Source of the DNA: Epithemia pelagica
Taxonomy: Eukaryota; Protista; Bacillariophyta
DNA length: 64,000 nucleotides
Assembly: GCA_946965045.2 (NCBI GenBank)
Contig: OX337239.1
Coordinates: forward strand, 310,001-374,000
Reading direction: 5' to 3'
The notes under the pieces are model-generated. The model was not told the DNA's origin, did no database searches, and saw only the letters and a program-made list of their open reading frames with translations. Within the stretch, counting starts at the first letter, position 1, and the number at the start of each line of letters is the position of its first letter. Below, in pieces: positions 2,431-48,311 of the stretch. The position numbers and the translations under genes were made by a program.

Positions 2431-4427
2431 TTGGAAAAGTCTGTATCCGCGAATGAACCAAAGGCAGGAGATACCAAAGAAACTGCCGAATCCCTCCAAG
2501 ACGGTGCAATCGAAACGGAAGAAGTGACTGAAAATCAACATGCAGAACCAGAGGAAGAAGCACCCCTGGTGAACATTCCCAATATACGTGAGATTCGTCA
2601 ATCGCAACAAAAGTTTCGAACAAGACTGTCAGTCCCCAACTGCAACTCTTGGATTTGGCACTGGCGGCTCTTCGAAGGTTGCATCGCATCCATCACGATC
2701 GAAGGGCAGTCATGGAAAACACTCTGGTGGCACAATCCCTGGAGCAGCTTCATGCGGAACAAGACAAGGATCAGGGCAAACCAAACAGTTTCTGGCAAAC
2801 AACCGTCAAGGGCATTGTCAACTTTTTGACCGCAAAAAGAACAAGAAGTAGACTCTGAATCGAAACCAGACGACATTCCGAAAAACTCCAAAACGGATGC
2901 GGAGATTCATGAGTATACCAAAGTGGAACAATCCACCGCGCTCAACGTGTTGCGACCCATGCTCTTTTCGTTTGCTCCAAGCTCAACAACCACATCGTCG
3001 TAATCCAGTCCGGCAGGAATTGGATTCACCTTGCCCAGAATATTGTCGAGAGGTTTCGGAACGCTTTATCGAGCTCTTGGACATTGTATCCAGACAAGAT
3101 CCCACCTTTACCATTTTGGATGCCTCGCAAACCGAAAAAGTCCTCCAGTTCCTCTGTTTGGGTGGTACCCTGAACAGTGCTGAATGGTGCCAGCACTTGT
3201 ACATGGCCCGAAAGGATGACAAGCCCCCAGGTAGGGGCAAACGCGATAAAGTGGTGGACGAAGACGGAGAAAAAATTGTGTGGCGGGCCTATGTACAAGT
3301 GGCCAAGAATAAAGATTGTCCCATGACGGAACGACAAGAAGCCGTTCGCAAACTGAAACGTTTGTTTATGGATCGATGGAACAAGAATTACCCTTTTTTC
3401 CAAGGTTCAGCGACTGGAACAAACATTGGCCGTGATTGCGGCTGTTTGTGAGATTTCGGATCAAGGTCTTGAGGAAGAATTCCAACAATTTGTCGTAACT
3501 GTGGTTCGTCGGTTTTGGGGAAAAGACTTTTACGAAGGATTCCGAAAAACTCTCGAGGAGGCAAAGGATCTCAAGAAGTACCTCAACGGACGAGATCCTG
3601 CGTTGATTGATTCACTCGCAGGAGCCTACGCCTGTCATGACTTGACAACCTCTCCAAAACTGATGGAGGTGTTGTTAGACCTGAAATCGTTGCGTACATC
3701 GGCAGAAACAACCGACCGATATATTGAACAACCGCTCCGCCATTACTATGACACACCCAAATCCGATCGAAACTCGGTCAGTGACGTGGAATTTGTCATG
3801 GCCTTGCTTTATTCGTCCATGTCCAAGTCGGAGTCATTAACCCGCACCTCGCAACATACCTTCTCCATGATTTCGACGCTGCTCACCCTCACTTCTCCTC
3901 CGCAAGTGGGACAACACTTTACGACATGGCTGGCGCATTTGGAGCTGCGAACCCTGATTGGGGGCGGTGATGTACAAGTAAAAGGAGCTGACTACAAACC
4001 AGGCCTATGGGCTTATTGGCAAGAAGCTAAGCAAAAAGGAGAAACGCAGCATGGGATCTCTTGGTAAAAAATGGACAGTCTTACCACTCCGCTGTTAATG
4101 AATGCCACCGAGGTTCGAGGGTCGAAAGGTGGTCGTTTGAAAATGCTGTACGATATCGATGATCAACCATCACAGCGTGCCTATGAGATTGTTTTGAACA
4201 TTATCTGCGAAGAAGTTGGTTCCAATGTCGAACCGGCAACACTGTTTTTGAAAGTGCTAGCCCTGGCCGAACGGAACAAGGTCGATCTGAGTCATTGGAA
4301 ACTGAATCGCATGCCGGATTGGGTCAAGCGACCGAAACTAGTTGATAGACCCCCGATCCGACAGACTGGATCCGGTGGAAGAAAAAGAAGAAGTTATGTA
4401 GATTCGGCGCTGGCGTCCCGGTCGTGA
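2431..4427 (+). pseudogene. Degraded gene of unknown family
   Basis: Collinear protein-like ORFs 2431-2829, 2649-2858, 2897-3451, 3426-4067 and 4071-4427. The last two are in the same frame, separated only by TAA-AAA. A frameshift lies near 3430. Confidence 0.6.
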
Positions 4428-4897: not shown

Positions 4898-5209
4898 AGA
4901 ACGACGACGGCCACCACATTTTCCTCGCGACGACCGAGCCGTAGTACTTCTAATAGCAACAAGAGGAGAAATCATTCCACCACCACCACATCTCTCCATG
5001 GCGATGGCCGAGCCGTAAAAAATGACAATGGGGATTGCAACCTTGGAACCACACCACCGCAAGTCTCCAAATAGGTTTTCCTTGCACAAATTTCTTTTGG
5101 ATCATCTCTTTGGTCCTCTCCTAGGTAACTCCTAACCACAAGCCCTGATTTTTCCATCCAGACCACGACAACTCGGAACTAGGTAGAAGATAGATAGTCT
5201 CTATATTGC

Positions 5210-5780
5210 GTACAGCTCTTGGTGGAAAGCCCGCTCGCGACGTCAACGCGGCTGTACATTGAACGGGTAGGGCGACAGGACATCAATGGATGCCTGTCAG
5301 GCAACTACGGCACACCCCAGAGGCTAATCAGAGGAGCCCCCAAACTCGTAAGTCGTCCCCATCATCTGGACACGAGTGCCCAGGGTGAGTAGGCTAATCA
5401 AGAGATAGCCCTAATCTCTAAATACATATGAACGGGGGCGGCGACAGGACATCAATGGATGCCTGTCAGGCAACTATGGCACACCCACACCCCATGTATT
5501 CCCCACCATCTGGACACGAGTGCCCAGGGTGAGTAGGCTAATCAAGAGGTAGCCCTAATCTCTTGGAGTACATACAATTTGAACGGAGGACGAGGCGACC
5601 GTATTGTATGTACTCCTGAGGCTAATCAGAGGAGCCCCCAAACTCCCCACCATCTGGACACGAGTGCCCAGGGTGAGTAGGCTAATCAAGAGGTAGCCCT
5701 AATCTCTATCTGGCACAGAGACCGAAGTCTCCATGCCAGATACCTGGTGACACAAGGACAAGTCCTCATGCCACCTGGGT
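5210..5780. repeat. Cluster of reiterated inverted-repeat (hairpin) modules, non-coding
   Basis: A ~57-nt unit CATCTGGACACGAGTGCCCAGGGTGAGTAGGCTAATCAAGAG(G/A)TAGCCCTAATCTCT occurs x3 (5363, 5507, 5651). GACAGGACATCAATGGATGCCTGTC occurs x2 (5274, 5443). A 14-bp perfect IR sits at 5565-5578/5603-5616 and a 9-bp IR at 5707-5715/5734-5742. Confidence 0.93.
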
Positions 5781-5920: not shown

Positions 5921-6880
5921 TCACCGACATGACTGTGCGCACGTACCACTAGCAACCGACAACCGACATGTTATTTTTCTGGGTTTTTTTGGATTTTTTT
6001 GCTTTTTCTGGGCTTTTTGGGATTTTTTTGCTTTTTCTGGGTTTTTTGGATTTTTTTCAACTCCACCACTACCCGTACCCGCGGACAAAAGACGAGCGGA
6101 TCGTCGAACGTGCACCATTCGGCGTGCCTTCTTGGAGTAGGCAACAACAAGGATCCTGCCCAAACGCGGGGAGTCCTCGGGGCCGGAGGAACTCTCGATC
6201 ACGCTTTGGGGGGCATTCTCGTCAATGTGAGGCGAGGGCGAGGTATCTTTTTGGGTGGGGGTGGGGGTGGGGGAAGGAGGGGTGGAATTTCGAGGGGGTG
6301 AGTCGTGCCCCAAAGTGATCTCGTCGTCGTCGTCAGGGATGAGCGCAGGTTCGGGCTCAGGCTGATGACGGTCGACTGGAGGGGTCTCCTCTTCCTCGTC
6401 GTCCTCGAGATCCTCTGCGAGTGCGAGAGGAGGGAAGTCCAAGTCAGCGTCGACCTCGCAAGGCAGAACAGCAACAGTGTCGACGTCGACCTCCTCCTCG
6501 CGATCGCGAATCTCGACCTCTCCATCCTCGTGACGACGATTCTGCTCTCCATCTTCGTGACGACGATTCTGCTCGCAGTCGCAGTGCTTCTCAGCAAGCT
6601 TTGCTTCAGCAATGGCCAGCTGTTGTTGAAGCTGAGCTTTGTCGTGTCGAAGCTGTTTAAGCTCCGCATGCTCGTGTCGAAGCTCCGCGTGTTCGCTACT
6701 TGTAGTACGACTTTTCTTGTTGAAAATGACCCGAAACAGGTGTTGGACGATAAGTTTCGCCTCATCGAGGACATCAGCGACACCGTAACACAGTATGAGA
6801 GTCACAAAAGGAGCAACTAACAGAGCCCATTCGGAGCTGATCATCTTTTCGTAACAGTAATCACAATCACACATCATCAT
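5921..6880 (-). CDS. Hypothetical protein: N-terminal hydrophobic segment, coiled coil, acidic/Pro-rich linker, C-terminal RRSARL motif and Lys-rich tail
   Basis: Open ORF of ~320 aa, with ATG at 6880. It contains an internal repeat EQNRRHEDG x2 and ...LGRILVVAYSKKARRMVHVRRSARLLSA. Confidence 0.6.
   Translation of the reverse strand: MMMCDCDYCYEKMISSEWALLVAPFVTLILCYGVADVLDEAKLIVQHLFRVIFNKKSRTTSSEHAELRHEHAELKQLRHDKAQLQQQLAIAEAKLAEKHCDCEQNRRHEDGEQNRRHEDGEVEIRDREEEVDVDTVAVLPCEVDADLDFPPLALAEDLEDDEEEETPPVDRHQPEPEPALIPDDDDEITLGHDSPPRNSTPPSPTPTPTQKDTSPSPHIDENAPQSVIESSSGPEDSPRLGRILVVAYSKKARRMVHVRRSARLLSAGTGSGGVEKNPKNPEKAKKSQKAQKKQKNPKKPRKITCRLSVASGTCAQSCR
5974..6057. repeat. 28-bp tandem repeat x3
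   Basis: The unit TTTTTCTGGG(T/C)TTTTTGGATTTTTTTGC repeats three times with small variations (84 bp). Confidence 0.9.
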
Positions 6881-7062
6881 GGTCAATCGTATTTTTGGTC
6901 AATCGTATTTTGTTTTTGTGCGTGTTGGATTGTTGCGTGTTGTTGTTGTTGGCGTTTCGTGTTGTTTGGCGATCGGACCATGGAGATTGCGAGGCAGCGG
7001 GGTCGGTTTAGACGAACGCAACAATCAACCGTTCGAGGGCAGCAACACCCACCGTCGGGGCA

Positions 7063-7873
7063 ATGTCGCACGTACCTCGAGGGTCGAGGGCAGCAACACA
7101 GCGCAACAATCAACCGTCGGATGCAGCGGAGTTCCACAACCAAGACGACGACGACAAGAACAAGAGCAAGTCCATGACGACGACACAACAACATCAACAA
7201 AACGAAGAAGAAGACTATGGCAATGAGGATGAAGAACACGAACCCTACTTTAATCCTCACGAAAAAACCTTGCTGCGACGATTGCCCAAACGATTGCGCC
7301 ACAAAATGTTGCCCTTTTGCGATCCAGAGTTCAAATCTGCATCGCCCTTCTTGTTTGCATTTTCCGTCGTGTTGGAGGCAGGTGCGGCAGTCTCATGTTT
7401 GGTGTTCAAGGATGGCTTGTCGTTTCTCGTGGGGGCTGCCTCTGGACTCCAGTCATCATCGACAACACTCTCCTTGAAGGATTGGCAGAGCCTCTTGGAC
7501 ATTGATGCGGAACCCATGTCGTGTGTTTTAATTTGGCTCTCGTCGTGTGTCTGTGTCATGGCAGTGACAGCCTATCGCGATGGCAACTTTGCCCGCTTGC
7601 TGTCGCGGTGGATCGGGGGCCGGTCGAATGGACTATACGGCCGTCCCCACTGCCGATTCCTCCAACGACAAAAGTGGAGCCAAGCGAGGCGATGTTCCTG
7701 CTTCGTACCGTGACCATCCCACACCTCAGGATACGTACAATTTACCATCGGAGGAAGCCGGGGATGGGAATGCTGGTGGTCCGTTTGAGTCAGAAGTGGA
7801 CGATTCATCTGTATTGACCTTCGATACGAAACCATTTGCAACCGGACAGCCCTTTGACGGAAGATCAGTTTGA
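7063..7873 (+). pseudogene. Unassigned coding-like fragments
   Basis: Overlapping ORFs 7063-7713 and 7580-7873 have protein-like composition. They may be upstream pieces of the Rab3GAP remnant; unresolved. Confidence 0.3.
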
Positions 7874-8069
7874 TACGAGCTTGCCTTCGGGGGGCAGGAA
7901 CAAAGAAATTCAAAGCATTTCCACACGGAAGCAACCATGACGGGCAAAGTGATGCAAGCCAGGCATCTCGGTATTGGGAATTGGGATTATCGAAGCGTGG
8001 CGAGTCGGGCGACGAGAAGAACCCGCAGAACGTTTGCGGATGACCCAAGTGTGGCGACCTTTCATACCG

Positions 8070-9251
8070 GGCAAATGACACAGTACTATGACGCCGACCA
8101 ACCCAGCCAAACAGAGGCGAATGAGCCTGTCATGTCCCGACGTGGATGACCACCCGCATGGGGTCCCGATGTCCCGTCGAAGGTCAAAGCATCCGAAGCA
8201 ACGGACATCAAGTCTTTGCACCCTATCTGCAGCGCCCTTTGCCGTTGACAGACGATTTGATGGCTCAGCGACGACAATGGTGGGGGCAACAAAGTACCTC
8301 TTCGAGTTCGGCAATGAACGGTCATTCAAATCTTGGCGTCGCCAAGCTTTCACCCATGTAGTCTCAGAGGGATATTCTAGAACGTGTTGAAGTGGACAAC
8401 ATGATGCAACGATCAAAATTGTTGTCAGACATGAGTGCCTTCAAGGCGGCCAATCCTGGATGCGACTTGGAAGACTTTATACATTGGTACGGTCAACCAC
8501 GCAGCGCTTTGACGGATGATCAGCAAGCTCAAGAACTTTTATCCTCCTTGTCGTCGTCCACCATGGATGCTCCAAATCCTGAACCATGTCCATCACCACC
8601 AGCAGCATCGAGTCTAGCAGTGGAGCGCACACGGGAGTTTGGGTCCAAAACATGGAAGGAAACACCTTCCATGGGGGCGGAAGATCAAGAGCCCTTGTTC
8701 CGAGCTTCGGATACTGTGGAAATTGCCTTGAATGATTGAAAGACCCTTCATCCCGCCAACTTATAAGCAGTGTTCTGGCAACCAACTTGAGCAATGCCTA
8801 CTTTTCGTCGGTGATTTCAGCTCAAGTCGGGGCGGATATCGGAGAACATGCGATTCAACTTGCAAGTATGCGCGTATACTTGACGCAGTCCATTGCTCCG
8901 AAAGGTTTACAACGATACACGGGTGAAGAGGATCAATTTCTTGATGTGTATCAATGGACGCAGTGGTTCTCGCTACAGAGGCGGTATGGAACAAATCTTC
9001 TTCGATTGCCTACGAATCCTACACGAAGTTTTAGGAATCAAAACTCTCAATGTGTCCATTGTCGTGAAGGAGAGCAAATCGATGAAGAAAGCTCCAGGCC
9101 TGCGAGTAAGACCTGCATCGTTGTTCATATCGCAGTAAAATTCCCTAGAAAAAAATTCCCAACAATTCTGCGCAGCGAAGATGTACTAGGAGTACTATTA
9201 TACGAATCTTTGGCAGCAAATGCACAACAGAAAGATATCCAAGTCGTTTGA
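8070..9251 (+). pseudogene. RAB3GAP1: Rab3 GTPase-activating protein catalytic subunit, C-terminal half, disrupted
   Basis: Family motifs APYLQRPLPLTDD and LLSDMSAFKAANPGCDLEDFIHWY are present. In-frame stops occur at 8359-8361 and 8737-8739, with frameshifts near 8140 and 8760. Confidence 0.85.
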
Positions 9252-9696
9252 AGAATAAACGGCAGTTCCTAGGAATACTGAAAACTGCTCTGGTGCAGCT
9301 CTTTCGCATACCGTACATGCAAAAGTACCATCGAGAAAATGGTCGCACAGGTGGACAGCAAGCAAGCCAATTGCTTCTGTCTCATGGAAAATGCATTTAC
9401 AATGGACCAACCTAAGCCGCAACAACAATGATGTTTCATGCTCATGGATCTCACATCCCTTTCCCACGGTTTTCTTGTTTACGACATCATTCCCGTGGGT
9501 GCGTCAACAAGTTTTGCCCATTCTCCGGAATCAAGAGCTTCTTGAATGTACTTGGCAAGTTTCAGGGCGGACGAATACTCTCCTTGCTCCGATTGCAGTC
9601 GAGACTGGAATTGAGAAAGTGACTCTTGAGGACAAGAAATACTCTCAACAAAGATACTCCCAGGTACACAAGGACAATCTGGAGTGACTCTGAGCA
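9243..9696. repeat. Segmental duplication copy B; partner 1-454
   Basis: Same alignment as copy A. Identity stops abruptly after ...GTGACTCTGAGCA (454/9696). Confidence 0.97.
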
Positions 9697-44188: not shown

Positions 44189-44853
44189 AGTCTACGGAAT
44201 TTTGTTTCATAGCGGTACTTCTCTCTGGACGAGTCAAGTATACTATCACATCGAGAAAGAACGGATCATTCGGTGCCATGGGGACACTCTGTCTTTTTGG
44301 GGCCGTACCTGGTAGCAGATAGGGATATTCATCGCGATAGCACAACTAACGAGTCACTGTTTTTGTGCAGTCTCGAATAGAAATCTTTATGTGTTTCGTC
44401 TTGAGGTCTCCTCGATCATGTTTCTTCATTTCTACACCAGAAACTGTGAGATAGGGAGATAGGCCTCGACAGATGTCATAGGAGTAGGAAAGAGTAGAGA
44501 CATGTATTCACAAATCGCCACAAACTATATGTCTGTGGGTCCCATCTATCAATGGCTACCCCTTCTACGAGAAATTTTGCGTGGTCAAGAGAGAACCCGT
44601 TCGGCCCCCATCAAGGGATCAGGTTTCAGGTTATGCGAGTCGCGAGACCCCGGGACCGGGTTCGTAACCAGGGAGATGGGGTAATCCTGAGCAGGTCGCT
44701 ACCTTACCAGTCAGATACTGACTGTGACCTATAGGAGTTACCGAACGCTTTTTCTGAATAAAGAACACTCTAGCGACAAAAGATGATATACTGACTGCTA
44801 GTACTATTAAAACCCACCACCACCCGGTTCATAACCGCTACATATTTGTACTG

Positions 44854-45792
44854 CTAGTCATCTTCCACTTCGATCTGAAACACTTTCGCCTCACCATTTT
44901 CAATCTTCATCTGAACCAGATTCACCACTGCTCCAAACACCTTGTGATGCCCATCCAGATCTCCTCTGTATTTCTCCTTTAAGATATTGTAATGTTTCAG
45001 TAAATTGTTGACAGTTTCATGTCTCGCCCTGGCATCAGCCATCATCTTGTCTTGATAGTCATTTCTTCCAGTAGGTGTGACAAAGTAGCATCCAGAATCG
45101 TTGTAACCACCATCAGCAATCACTTTCTCATTCGGTAGTAGCTCTTGAACAAGCCAGTCTCTGGCAATCCGTAGGTCTGGCCAAGCGCCACAAGGGAATG
45201 CACCATTCCACCACACTATCCAGCCAGTTTTCAGGCAGATTCCCACCTCATACCTCACACCTGCTCCCTTAAACTTGTGCGAGTACCATTTTGGATCAAA
45301 AGGTGACGGTTCCAAAATCCTGAAGTCAGTACCATCCAAACTAATGAAACAGACCTGTCCAGGTACACAACAATCAAACCTATTGTCCCATACAATCTGT
45401 TATAAGAACAACAGCAATGGTCAGATATGAGGAGGACGACTTCATGGCAAATTCATGTAGGGCCATGTACTTACATAATTAAGACCACTACACAACAAAT
45501 TTACAAACACTTTGACCCACTTCCTGTAGGTCTTCCTCGTTGTTTTGGCTATTGAGACCATAACATCCTCTGTAGCATAGACTTTCAGAAAAGCCAATGT
45601 CCACAACAAATGACGAGGCGATGCACCTTTGGGCAATGAACTGTCCAGTTCATCCCACACATGAACACAGAGCAAAGGAGACATTCCAAAGTAAGAACGA
45701 AAAGCACGTGAGAAATCAAGTGAGTGTGAGTGTCTTGCTCTACCAAGCATTGGCAGAGCCAAGTTGATGAATATTCGTTGTGTCACCAACAT
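44854..45792 (-). CDS. DDE_Tnp_4-type transposase, 2 exons, ~286 aa
   Basis: A phase-0 intron at 45397-45474 joins SGLNY to IVWDNRF. Motifs SLDGTDF, YSHKFK, PDL, IADGGY and RARHETVN are intact. Confidence 0.92.
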
Positions 45793-46130
45793 GGTGGGAG
45801 AAAACCGCTTTGGAAAATTTGTGTTTGCTCAGTGTGTGTCGCGATGCTGACCACACCTTTACTCTGATCTCGGTCTGTCTGTGTGTAGTACTGTCAGTTC
45901 ATTGGAACAGGTTTTTTGGAATTTCATCACGTTCATTTGATTGGCTGGTCAGTTGAGCAGCGACACTAAACTTTGTACTGTTCTACATATAGTGACCAAT
46001 TCGAATTCGTGTCCGGTCATTGGAACCGGCCTGGAACGGTGCAGAAATCGATTCAAAAATCGTTTTCATTCAAAAACTGGAATTTCTGAATGGCCCTACC
46101 TCGCCAACATCCTATTACTTTCTACATCTT

Positions 46131-46357
46131 AAGCGACCCACATATTGCCCTTATCTTGGGTTAACTGTGGGTCGCTTGATTATATCATTTGAACGACTAG
46201 AAAGTGTCCTGGGTCGGTTTTGAAAAAACGACCTGGCTCGAAAAAATCGACCCAGCTCGTTTTTTTAAAACCGACCCAGGACACCTTATAAGTGCCCAAT
46301 TCACTTGGACGAACGACCCACGGTTGACCCAAGGTAAGGGCAATACGTGGGTCGCAC
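46131..46357. repeat. Concentric nested palindromes
   Basis: An 18-bp perfect IR at 46204-46221/46267-46284 encloses further pairing. It is flanked by two mutually inverted 41-bp units (46134-46174, 46314-46354; 4 mismatches), each itself a hairpin. Confidence 0.95.
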
Positions 46358-46548
46358 TACTTCCAGAATTGGAGCCAAATTGGGCATGGCCTCCTCGATT
46401 GAAAAATGGAGTCCATGATGAAAACCGACCCAGTCCGGATTTTGGTGAACTGTTTTTAGGGTCATAATTAGTTTTCGTGCGAACAGACCAGTCTGGTTTT
46501 GCACTCCCTCGCGCTTTTGTTTTACGTACTAATAGTACCTATACTCCG

Positions 46549-47624
46549 ATGACCAGGTCTGGCCGCAACACTTTGGGCGAGGGTGCCCTACTTTCGTGGA
46601 ATTCAAAGTCAACAGATGCCGAATTCCTTGACAAAATCGTGTCAGAAGGCTTGATTTCGGAGAGCGCCACACCCAAATCTGTGTGGTTGGAACACGCTGT
46701 TTTCCAAAAGTACAAATTGGAATCATTCAGGTCGGCACTCAACAAAGCCAAAAGAAAATACCAAGTCCACTTGAAGGATCAACATGAGAGAGAGACTGGT
46801 CATGGTCATGAGTTGGGTGGTGGTGAGACGGCCCCATCTATGGATGGAAAGGTAAGGAACCCCAATGATGGAGATCTCAAACCAGCTCCTTCTTTGTTTG
46901 GGTCGTCCAAAGGACAAGGTAAGTGCCAGTGTACACTGTTTGTTTGATTGTTGAGTCACTGTCCTTACCTGTTGTGGTTTATTGTCTTTTATGACCAGGT
47001 GTTGCTGCCAAGGTCGCTCCTGAGTCTGTTGTCAGTGACGATGCTATGGTGAAGAAAAGGGCGGCAGGATCCATGGCATTACAGGAGACACTACAGGTAC
47101 AACTACAACAAAAGAGGAAAAAGACGAATGAAGAAGACAGTGGTAATGACATGATGAGGAATTGGGAGCCTCCTCATGTCTTGACACAGTGGGTCGACGA
47201 CAAGAAACAGCGTCATTTGGTGATTTTGGTGGTGTTGCCTACAGGTATTGCACATGAAGACACAACAAATTGCTTGATTGAAGTGGATCCGAGCCAGCTA
47301 CAGGTACATGTGAAGGTAATTTGGCCTGACAACGCAACTCATATCCATTATCTAACCCAACACATGCCCAGAGAGTGGCATGTCGAGGAGAAAAACCTAC
47401 GAATGAAACTTGCTTTGGAAGACGCCATGAATCAGATGCGAAAAAGAGAAACAGACTTTGTCAGGTCAAAGTTTTCTCTTTCTCTTCCTTTCATGGTCCA
47501 AAGCAGGTTCGACTACGAATTTATGTACGACACAACAAACGGATTCAGAGCGTTGTTGATTTCCCTACATGAGCCGGACGCACAATTTGAAGGCGGCATG
47601 AAGCACAAGATGGTGCGTCTGTAA
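46549..47624 (+). CDS. Transposon accessory protein (ORF2), 2 exons, ~331 aa
   Basis: A phase-1 intron at 46919-46998 (GTAAGT...CAG) joins the ORFs in frame. Helical N-terminus (FQKYKLESFRSALNKAKRK) and beta-rich C-terminus. Confidence 0.85.
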
Positions 47625-48311
47625 ATTAATGTAGTATGATTTGGGGCGGTTGCAAAAACCGGGTGGTGGTGGGCCTAAATCTTTCTATTAGTTCTCTATT
47701 TGTCTATGTTCATAGTTTATGCTATAGTACATCGATTAAGCGTTCTGGTCGTGTTCCGCTTTGTAGTCAGTCTTTGCCTGGAATGACAGCGAGCTGCTCA
47801 GGATTACCCCAGCTCCCAGTCCGAGTAGTACATTCTAGCTTTCGTAGTTTCTAATTGTCGTTAAATATTAAGTTTTTCAGTAGATGTCGCCGCTGGAGAT
47901 TCAAAAACTCGAAGGTATCCTGCCATAAAGGCCGAACCCTCTCCAAGATCCTTCTTCATTTTCAGTTTGGATCAATGTCATCATGAACGTGTGCCTTTTA
48001 TCATCAACAACCCTGCAACGATGCAACGAACTGCACGTAGACAGTATCTCCAACTCGGTCAAGCGAGACCGAACGTGACGAGTGAATGGTGCCTCACAGA
48101 AAGGTGTTTTTGCTCCGATTCCGCTCATTGTCTCAAAATCTTGCACAACAACGATTCATTCTTTGGTTTGTAGACGGAACCGATCATTGATACTTTCTGA
48201 AGCTCGAAGTCAAGGCCTGTAGCTTGATGAACATTCCGTTCCAACGACAGTCGCCCCATTTTACGAGAAGTAGTAGTATTAACAGCACCTTGTGTCGCAA
48301 CGCAAGCCATT

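Follow-up and report, generated by a model that had tools for sequence, protein, structure and literature searches.

A palindromic module at the center of a two-gene diatom transposon, shared with a sister family and a foldback MITE: a candidate bidirectional promoter/operator

A two-gene element, its ends, and its copies

The window analyzed here, a stretch of diatom DNA 64 kb in length, contains a transposon that occupies positions 44672–47816 (3145 bp), the span common to its paralogous copies. It carries two divergent genes. The transposase gene (~286 amino acids) is read on the minus strand (44854–45792; exon 1 45475–45792, inferred intron 45397–45474, exon 2 44854–45396), and its product, a DDE transposase of the DDE_Tnp_4/HARBI1 type, matches the corresponding Pfam family (PF13359) with 35.6 bits where the cut-off is 24.8 (E = 9.2e-09) and has 445 homologues. 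This match bears out the initial annotation of the locus as a PIF/Harbinger-superfamily element with two divergent genes. The partner gene, ORF2 (~331 amino acids), is read on the plus strand (46549–47624; exon 1 46549–46918, inferred intron 46919–46998, exon 2 46999–47624). The splice sites were inferred from GT-AG and the reading frame in the sequence. One short GT-AG intron (~78–80 nt; window 45388–45480 and 46919–46998) is apparent in each of the element's genes, and the prokaryote-style gene calls of the public assembly break each gene into two to three pieces.

Homologues of ORF2 are conserved at 51–98% identity, and its N-terminal domain of ~65 amino acids (window 46549–46851, plus strand) is present in 66 representative proteins. 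ORF2, this domain included, had no match in Pfam, and for the domain neither a sequence search of the PDB nor Foldseek (at E ≤ 0.001) returned a match. Its predicted structure is a bundle of three to four helices (pLDDT 72). The best VIA-align partners of this model were GARP-type Myb DNA-binding domains, with Z scores of 5.0–5.4 that lie under the tool's reliability level and perhaps reflect merely a common arrangement. Such weak Myb-like matches would nonetheless fit the canonical DNA-binding partner of the superfamily, the component that brings the transposase to the element's ends (PMC2836001).

The limits of the element follow from the extent of homology among the paralogues and from the 3-bp duplications in their flanks. 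Twenty copies at other loci align with window 44671–47817 at 96–100% identity, and outside this span there is no similarity; the copies L002, L011, and L145 are deleted or truncated versions of it. The homology begins at the left terminal inverted repeat (TIR; 44672–44723, plus strand) and stops at the right one (47765–47816, minus strand). The TIRs, of ~52 bp and with GGAGATGGGGTAATCCTGAGCAG as their first bases, constitute inverted repeat I2 (53 nt, 83% complementary), and at more than 20 loci the termini of the copies coincide exactly with the TIR ends. In the window, the target-site duplication is CAG (44669–44671 on the left, 47817–47819 on the right). Among the 21 copies whose flanks were compared, it is CAG in nine, CTG in eight, and CGG, CCG, and TTG in one each, with one mismatched pair; a matching pair of CAG or CTG is thus found in 17 of the 21.

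The initial annotation had described a 2865-bp transposon (44811–47675) with a TAA duplication. Those ends are ruled out by the homology over 44671–47817 and by the CWG duplication, and the sister family described below keeps the adjoining motif but not the TAA. What had been taken for TIRs is an internal, conserved subterminal motif (inverted repeat I3), CCACCACCACCCGGTT on the left (44794–44829) and AACCGGGTGGTGGTGGG on the right (47657–47692), situated inside the shared homology. The core CCACCCGGT of the left motif is retained in the sister family, at position 3933 of its copy L150, and the right motif is conserved at L150 6724–6741. An inverted motif of the form CCACC(ACCACC)CGGTT lies 25–40 bp past both stop codons (window 44814–44829 and 47657–47675) and is common to both families (L150 3933–3941 and 6724–6741). 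It may act as a 3'-end signal or as a subterminal site for binding.

At least 24 copies of the family were found, 21 of which were aligned end to end; the 23 loci examined come from one ENA assembly (ERZ21939226), and this single assembly contains all the close relatives of the transposase. L021 is identical to the window element and has a neighboring 1560-aa ORF in common with it, and hence is the window's own locus. With just 0–4 base differences in eight copies over 3147 bp, the family is very young. In one copy, L010, the left terminus is tandemly duplicated (63 bp), which gives two successive left TIRs (reverse-complement coordinates 4255–4319; about 5087–5151 of the locus), and the target duplication is CCG, not CWG.

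On these sequence characters, the element is a NuwaI-type PIF/Harbinger (PHIS) transposon, a new family of a known kind, and the annotation is corrected accordingly in its ends, duplication, and type. The group assignment comes from the CWG target duplication: Han et al. (2015, PMC4482050) give a 3-bp 5'-CWG-3' duplication as the mark of NuwaI, a group within the PHIS (PIF/Harbinger-ISL2EU-Spy) superfamily that they describe as mainly animal, a range that the diatom host would extend. Like the elements characterized there, ours has a DDE_Tnp_4-type transposase, a second gene, TIRs, and the 3-bp CWG duplication; unlike them, it has a partner protein with a weak Myb-like fold match in place of a Pfam Myb/SANT match.

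The central palindrome and its position

Between the divergent start codons (45792 and 46549) lies an imperfect inverted repeat of 223 bp (I1; 46133–46355) centered on 46244. Its arms (46133–46241 and 46247–46355) are 109 nt each, 79% complementary, and separated by 5 nt. Each arm contains a hairpin unit. The left unit, H1 (46131–46177; inverted repeat I8), has 12-bp stems (46131–46142 and 46166–46177, 12 of 12 positions complementary) that hold GCGACCCAC and enclose a conserved loop of 23 nt. Its mirror image, H2 (46312–46356, part of I1; hairpin 46314–46354), has CGACCCA at 46314 (plus strand) and 46348 (minus strand). At the center is a near-palindrome of 81 bp (46204–46284) in which units that read CGACC-YR-GSTCG are flanked by A/T runs; it includes two tandem 19-nt units (46222–46259), and CGACCYRGSTCG occurs in the window at 46229 and 46248 only. 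An extra AAAACCGACCCAG unit (46421–46433, plus strand; direct-repeat family D1, inverted repeat I6) lies outside the palindrome on the ORF2 side. A repeat finder and direct reading both confirmed the common center of the near-palindrome and the mirrored hairpins, as first described, and a count confirmed that CGACCCA occurs exactly eight times, on both strands, in 46134–46432. The window total of this heptamer is 19 against 8.75 expected, a number reached by no shuffle, and for eight of the 19 sites to fall in 300 bp the binomial P is about 1e-14. As a consequence of the mirror symmetry, the same ~110-bp sequence lies upstream of both genes in equal relative orientation, at unequal distances from center to start codon (452 nt for the transposase and 305 nt for ORF2).

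As single-stranded DNA, the segment 46120–46368 folds at −82.5 kcal/mol, against −26.3 ± 3.7 in shuffles (z = −15). So strong a fold lends some appeal to the idea that the module acts as RNA, a read-through hairpin of ~220 nt giving rise to small RNAs that damp the element, whether by self-limitation or by host silencing, and there were sub-threshold matches to miRNA precursors on both strands. The best of these (MIR1319; 36.9 bits, where the gathering score is 116.6) reflects the hairpin shape only, however, and the Rfam search reached no family. The loop sequences, moreover, are conserved beyond what pairing would explain, and no compensatory changes were seen. We consider this role very doubtful.

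With the ends corrected, the midpoint of the element, (44672 + 47816)/2 = 46244, is the center of the palindrome. The earlier claim of a palindrome at the midpoint therefore survives the revision of the ends, but it holds to the base only in one of the three length classes into which the 21 aligned copies fall. The 3147-bp class (eight copies, 0–4 substitutions relative to the window) has left and right arms of 1572 and 1572 bp. The corresponding arms are 1572 and 1566 bp in the 3141-bp class (three copies, 4–22 substitutions), and 1572 and 1569 bp in six clean copies of the 3144-bp or derived class (10 copies, several with further indels, 22–80 substitutions). Arm lengths thus differ by 3 or 6 bp outside the 3147-bp subfamily, contrary to the expectation that they would stay equal despite indels. 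The alignment traces the exact equality to a 6-bp tandem duplication, TGGTCA, in ORF2 (46797–46802, plus strand), which is present only in this youngest subfamily; a TTG duplication near the same site marks the 3144-bp class. On the simplest reading of these sequences, the exact equality would be a recent slippage accident, and the ancestral arms would have been 6 bp apart in length. Decayed copies, with arm differences of 29–31 bp, are uninformative on the centering.

Random placement of a 223-bp block within the 756-bp intergenic region would bring it as close as ±3 bp to the midpoint with P = 0.013, a suggestive figure, but one for a coincidence noticed post hoc. In L150 the center of the palindrome core (5336.5) lies close to the midpoint of the conserved subterminal motifs (5333); the same measure gives 46244 in the window. 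In our reading, the coincidence with the element's midpoint is inherited geometry plus chance, and the fact that so striking a base-exact symmetry is a recent accident cautions against inferring design from coincidences of this kind.

It had been proposed that a single strand folding at this center would bring the TIRs into register, so that a folded strand or cruciform, with its center exactly at the midpoint, aligns the ends for synapsis or replication. We regard this as highly improbable. Speaking for it are the base-exact coincidence in the 3147-bp subfamily, an offset of only a few base pairs in the remaining subfamilies (and, if measured from the subterminal motifs, in the sister family too), and the low probability of chance placement; the exactness, however, comes from the slippage in ORF2, and the likely older forms are 3–6 bp unequal. 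Arms of ~1.5 kb, about ten persistence lengths, are also too flexible for register at the level of the base. Furthermore, the PIF/Harbinger superfamily moves as double-stranded DNA, so that the folding of a single strand is no known step, and we know of no single-strand stage in its DDE cut-and-paste transposition. Finally, the interiors of the arms are unrelated: outside the TIRs and the center, the left arm, compared in register with the reverse-complemented right arm, is 24.9% identical to it, the random level, and registers shifted by up to 30 positions either way are no better. This last result also disposes of the suggestion that the structure is the scar of a head-to-head fusion, as it leaves no sign of a fusion of like halves.

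The module is present in every family copy without a central deletion and is missing in whole or in part from three. The deletions in L002 (45960–46681) and L011 (46063–46338) overlap it, and that in L008 (46197–46257) removes part of it. Three of the five internal deletions of at least 20 bp thus overlap the module (chance P = 0.024), an excess that fits the known instability of long palindromes. Related copies that lack the palindrome had been held to count against its significance; they do exist in these three (in L008 only part is lost), but the remaining family copies keep it. Nucleotide diversity is no different in the module (pi = 0.011) from elsewhere in the element, and the family copies show no covariation, their divergence being too low to expect any. 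Constraint is not visible within the family because the copies are too young.

The module in a sister family and a foldback MITE

A search with ORF2 showed that the genome also contains a sister family (P0143, with 20 members), which we judge here from one decayed copy, L150. L150 has the same divergent gene pair, with amino-acid identities of 53–66% for the transposase and 56–60% for ORF2, and in coding DNA the two families are 66–70% identical. In the intergenic region, BLAST aligned only the palindrome core (59 bp, 81% identity, L150 5305–5362) and a piece of hairpin (38 bp, 82%). The left TIR of L150 is missing and its ORF2 has an in-frame stop. A 16-bp direct repeat, GTCGACAGCGAAGGGT, stands on either side of the copy (3773–3788 and 6881–6896), and the insertion seems to have been rearranged or to have lost a part. 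Directly downstream (7412–9520) is a transposase gene of the piggyBac type (DDE_Tnp_1_7).

The module also recurs in a nonautonomous element. A family copy at locus L019 has inserted into an 808-bp foldback MITE, which we recovered by joining the flanks of that copy (L019 1444–1905 and 5047–5392); the copy sits 58 bp to the left of the center of the MITE and has a TTG duplication. This MITE, fb808, known from this one copy, is 92% self-complementary, has a CAG duplication and no coding capacity, and its ends begin with GGGGTGTGGGGTAAACCTGA. The right end of L150 is 90% identical to its TIR, and on this likeness fb808 is the sister family's MITE. At its center it has the same succession of hairpin, palindrome, and hairpin, 72–77% identical over ~245 bp, with hairpins ~80% identical to H1. 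It contains 15 CGACC sites in 808 bp, and within 52 nt of each end there are three inward-facing [ACT]GACC[CA]A sites. The half-modules of both families and of fb808 align with z = 9–15, while DNA more than 125 nt from the center aligns weakly or not at all (z = 0.4–4.6). The suggestion that the module might occur elsewhere as an independent MITE is therefore half borne out: it is found in a MITE, but there again it is central and not free-standing.

The arms of fb808 bear on how such an element could arise. From the center outward, the first ~240 nt of an arm run collinear with the intergenic half of the sister family (z = 10), and beyond 125 nt the match is better to the ORF2 side (z = 4.6) than to the transposase side (z = 2.1). 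We take this match to the gene-proximal intergenic half, together with the palindromy about the module, as a sign that a strand switch occurred at the palindrome. We suggest that ORF2 was deleted and that a strand switch at the palindrome center, in repair or replication, would then have given the symmetrical product. A long palindrome would accordingly have two side effects, as a deletion hotspot and as a strand-switch point from which a symmetrical foldback MITE may be produced.

Could the module itself be a mobile sequence, or the remains of one? No target duplication or TIRs of its own were found around 46131–46357, either in the window or in fb808, and no free-standing module was found in the 64-kb window and ~230 kb of fetched loci (about 0.3 Mb), where all matches to it fall in family copies, fb808, or the sister family. 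The entire intergenic region was also considered as a nested fb808-like MITE and the idea rejected, because outside the module the arms of fb808 match it at the level of shuffles (z = 0.5–1.8). A metagenome scan for the hairpin with 9-bp stems gave 119 stretches, all of them chance and none homologous to the module, and a search for stray copies by way of a spurious 87-aa ORF that crosses the module gave just one further family copy, L145.

Elements from other samples contribute one informative case. L149, an intact ~4.1-kb relative from an unrelated sample (about 56% identity), has the same divergent transposase/ORF2 pair and TIRs of 45 nt that are 91% complementary (1–45 and 4076–4120); no central palindrome above background was found in it, so that such a palindrome is dispensable for elements of this kind in general. 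L023–L025, L146, and L147, from other assemblies, are single decayed copies without clear ends and are therefore silent on the centering. In L025, a 19-bp palindrome upstream of the transposase has GAAGTCGTGAAA in common with a TIR-like stretch near the element's end (4185–4234, 5736–5772, and 6188–6204), a second instance in which the upstream region has sequence like that of the ends.

These comparisons also bear on the view that the module is functionless, a relic left by an old inverted duplication, or by a foldback-type insertion in the ancestor that both families share, with its central position a coincidence. The absence of extra constraint within the family, the removal of the module by deletion in three of about 24 copies, and the lack of it in the distant relative L149 are all as this view would have it. 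A relic should hardly, however, be the only intergenic part that can still be aligned between the families (save for weak traces), with conservation at least equal to that of coding DNA (81% vs. 66–70%), and an old insertion might have left a flanking target duplication, a TIR of its own, or a solo copy in the DNA surveyed. On balance, a relic appears unlikely.

A candidate promoter/operator and its rivals

PIF/Harbinger elements require two proteins simultaneously, and the coupling of their expression is poorly understood. The reading that we favor, although we give it somewhat less than an even chance, is that the module is a conserved palindromic promoter/operator of the two divergent genes, built from CGACC-type sites. 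A symmetric operator was among the roles first proposed for the structure, and the preference for it stems from the site between the start codons, the motif array, the mirrored sequence upstream of both genes, and the conservation of this one intergenic part across two families. Within the control region between the two genes of this NuwaI-type transposon, the module would then form the conserved core. Each half would offer a hairpin unit and CGACC-YR-GSTCG sites between A/T runs, and since the ~110-bp halves are mirrored, a reader of these sites would meet the same arrangement from either gene. A bidirectional promoter/operator of this design would couple the expression of the two jointly needed proteins, and the sites may be occupied by a host factor or, alternatively, by the DNA-binding partner that the element itself encodes. 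Four observations weigh against such a role: the module shows no extra within-family constraint, its center is asymmetric with respect to the start codons, the intact L149 has the same gene pair and no central palindrome, and the noncoding fb808 retains the module with no need for a promoter.

The last of these is more readily accommodated by the main rival, a cis-acting role in transposition, in which the module is an internal array of binding sites for the putative Myb-like partner and the transposase that aids the assembly or pairing of the ends. Such a role, which we consider rather unlikely by itself, is compatible with a promoter/operator. Not only does fb808 keep the module intact, along with its 15 CGACC sites and its end-proximal [ACT]GACC[CA]A sites, but in the window CAGSTCG is found in both TIRs (44692, plus strand; 47790, minus strand) and twice at the center (46229, minus strand; 46253, plus strand). 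Five of its 11 window matches fall inside 4.9% of the sequence (P = 1e-4, for a pattern chosen post hoc). The module is also nearly equidistant from both ends in two families, although the flexibility of 1.5-kb arms deprives exact equidistance of any weight. On the other side, alignment of the TIRs to the module is at the level of shuffles (z = 1.2–1.8) and CGACCCA is absent from the subterminal regions of the window family. L149 dispenses with such a center, and L002 lacks it altogether and yet has an intact CAG duplication, although its deletion may either pre- or postdate the insertion. TIR-like pseudo-ends inside the hairpins were considered as well and set aside, the alignment being suggestive but not significant.

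The two roles might also be combined. The palindrome would in that case be a dual site bound by the Myb-like partner, which would serve both in the autoregulation of the two genes and, as a roughly equidistant internal enhancer, in the assembly of the transposition complex. This would explain the retention of the module in a noncoding foldback MITE. A dual operator/enhancer is known in phage Mu but, to our knowledge, in no eukaryotic cut-and-paste transposon, and we consider the combination quite unlikely here. The family, the sister family, and the derived MITE together provide a compact natural test case, in which the 223-bp block could be examined for bidirectional promoter/operator activity, for binding of the partner protein, and for a part in the formation of foldback MITEs as their hinge.

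A limited literature search found no description of a central palindrome common to two sister families that is also the axis of a foldback MITE, and no relevant paper on central palindromes in transposons; the part of the NuwaI/PHIS description used here (PMC4482050) makes no mention of a conserved central palindrome. The components nevertheless have counterparts. Like Tourist-like or foldback PIF/Harbinger MITEs, fb808 is noncoding, has a CAG duplication, and shares the TIRs of an autonomous family (here the sister family); unlike simple internal-deletion MITEs, it is a 92% palindrome whose axis is the central module of the autonomous element. The module resembles palindromic (mirror-duplicated) bidirectional promoters, in which both divergent genes are preceded by identical sequence in the same relative orientation, but it differs from them in its unequal distances to the two start codons, and its promoter activity is putative. 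The En/Spm TnpA sites and the operator/internal activation sequence of phage Mu are established cases of transposon binding sites that double as promoter control. In En/Spm these sites are subterminal and in Mu they lie ~1 kb from one end, whereas here they are central; binding is proven there and putative here, with no kinship of sequence or protein. What our element has in common with both systems is an array of short motifs, repeated in direct and inverted orientation in the control region of the genes that the element carries, with related half-sites at the ends: CAGSTCG in the TIRs of the window family and the CGACC-type sites of fb808.
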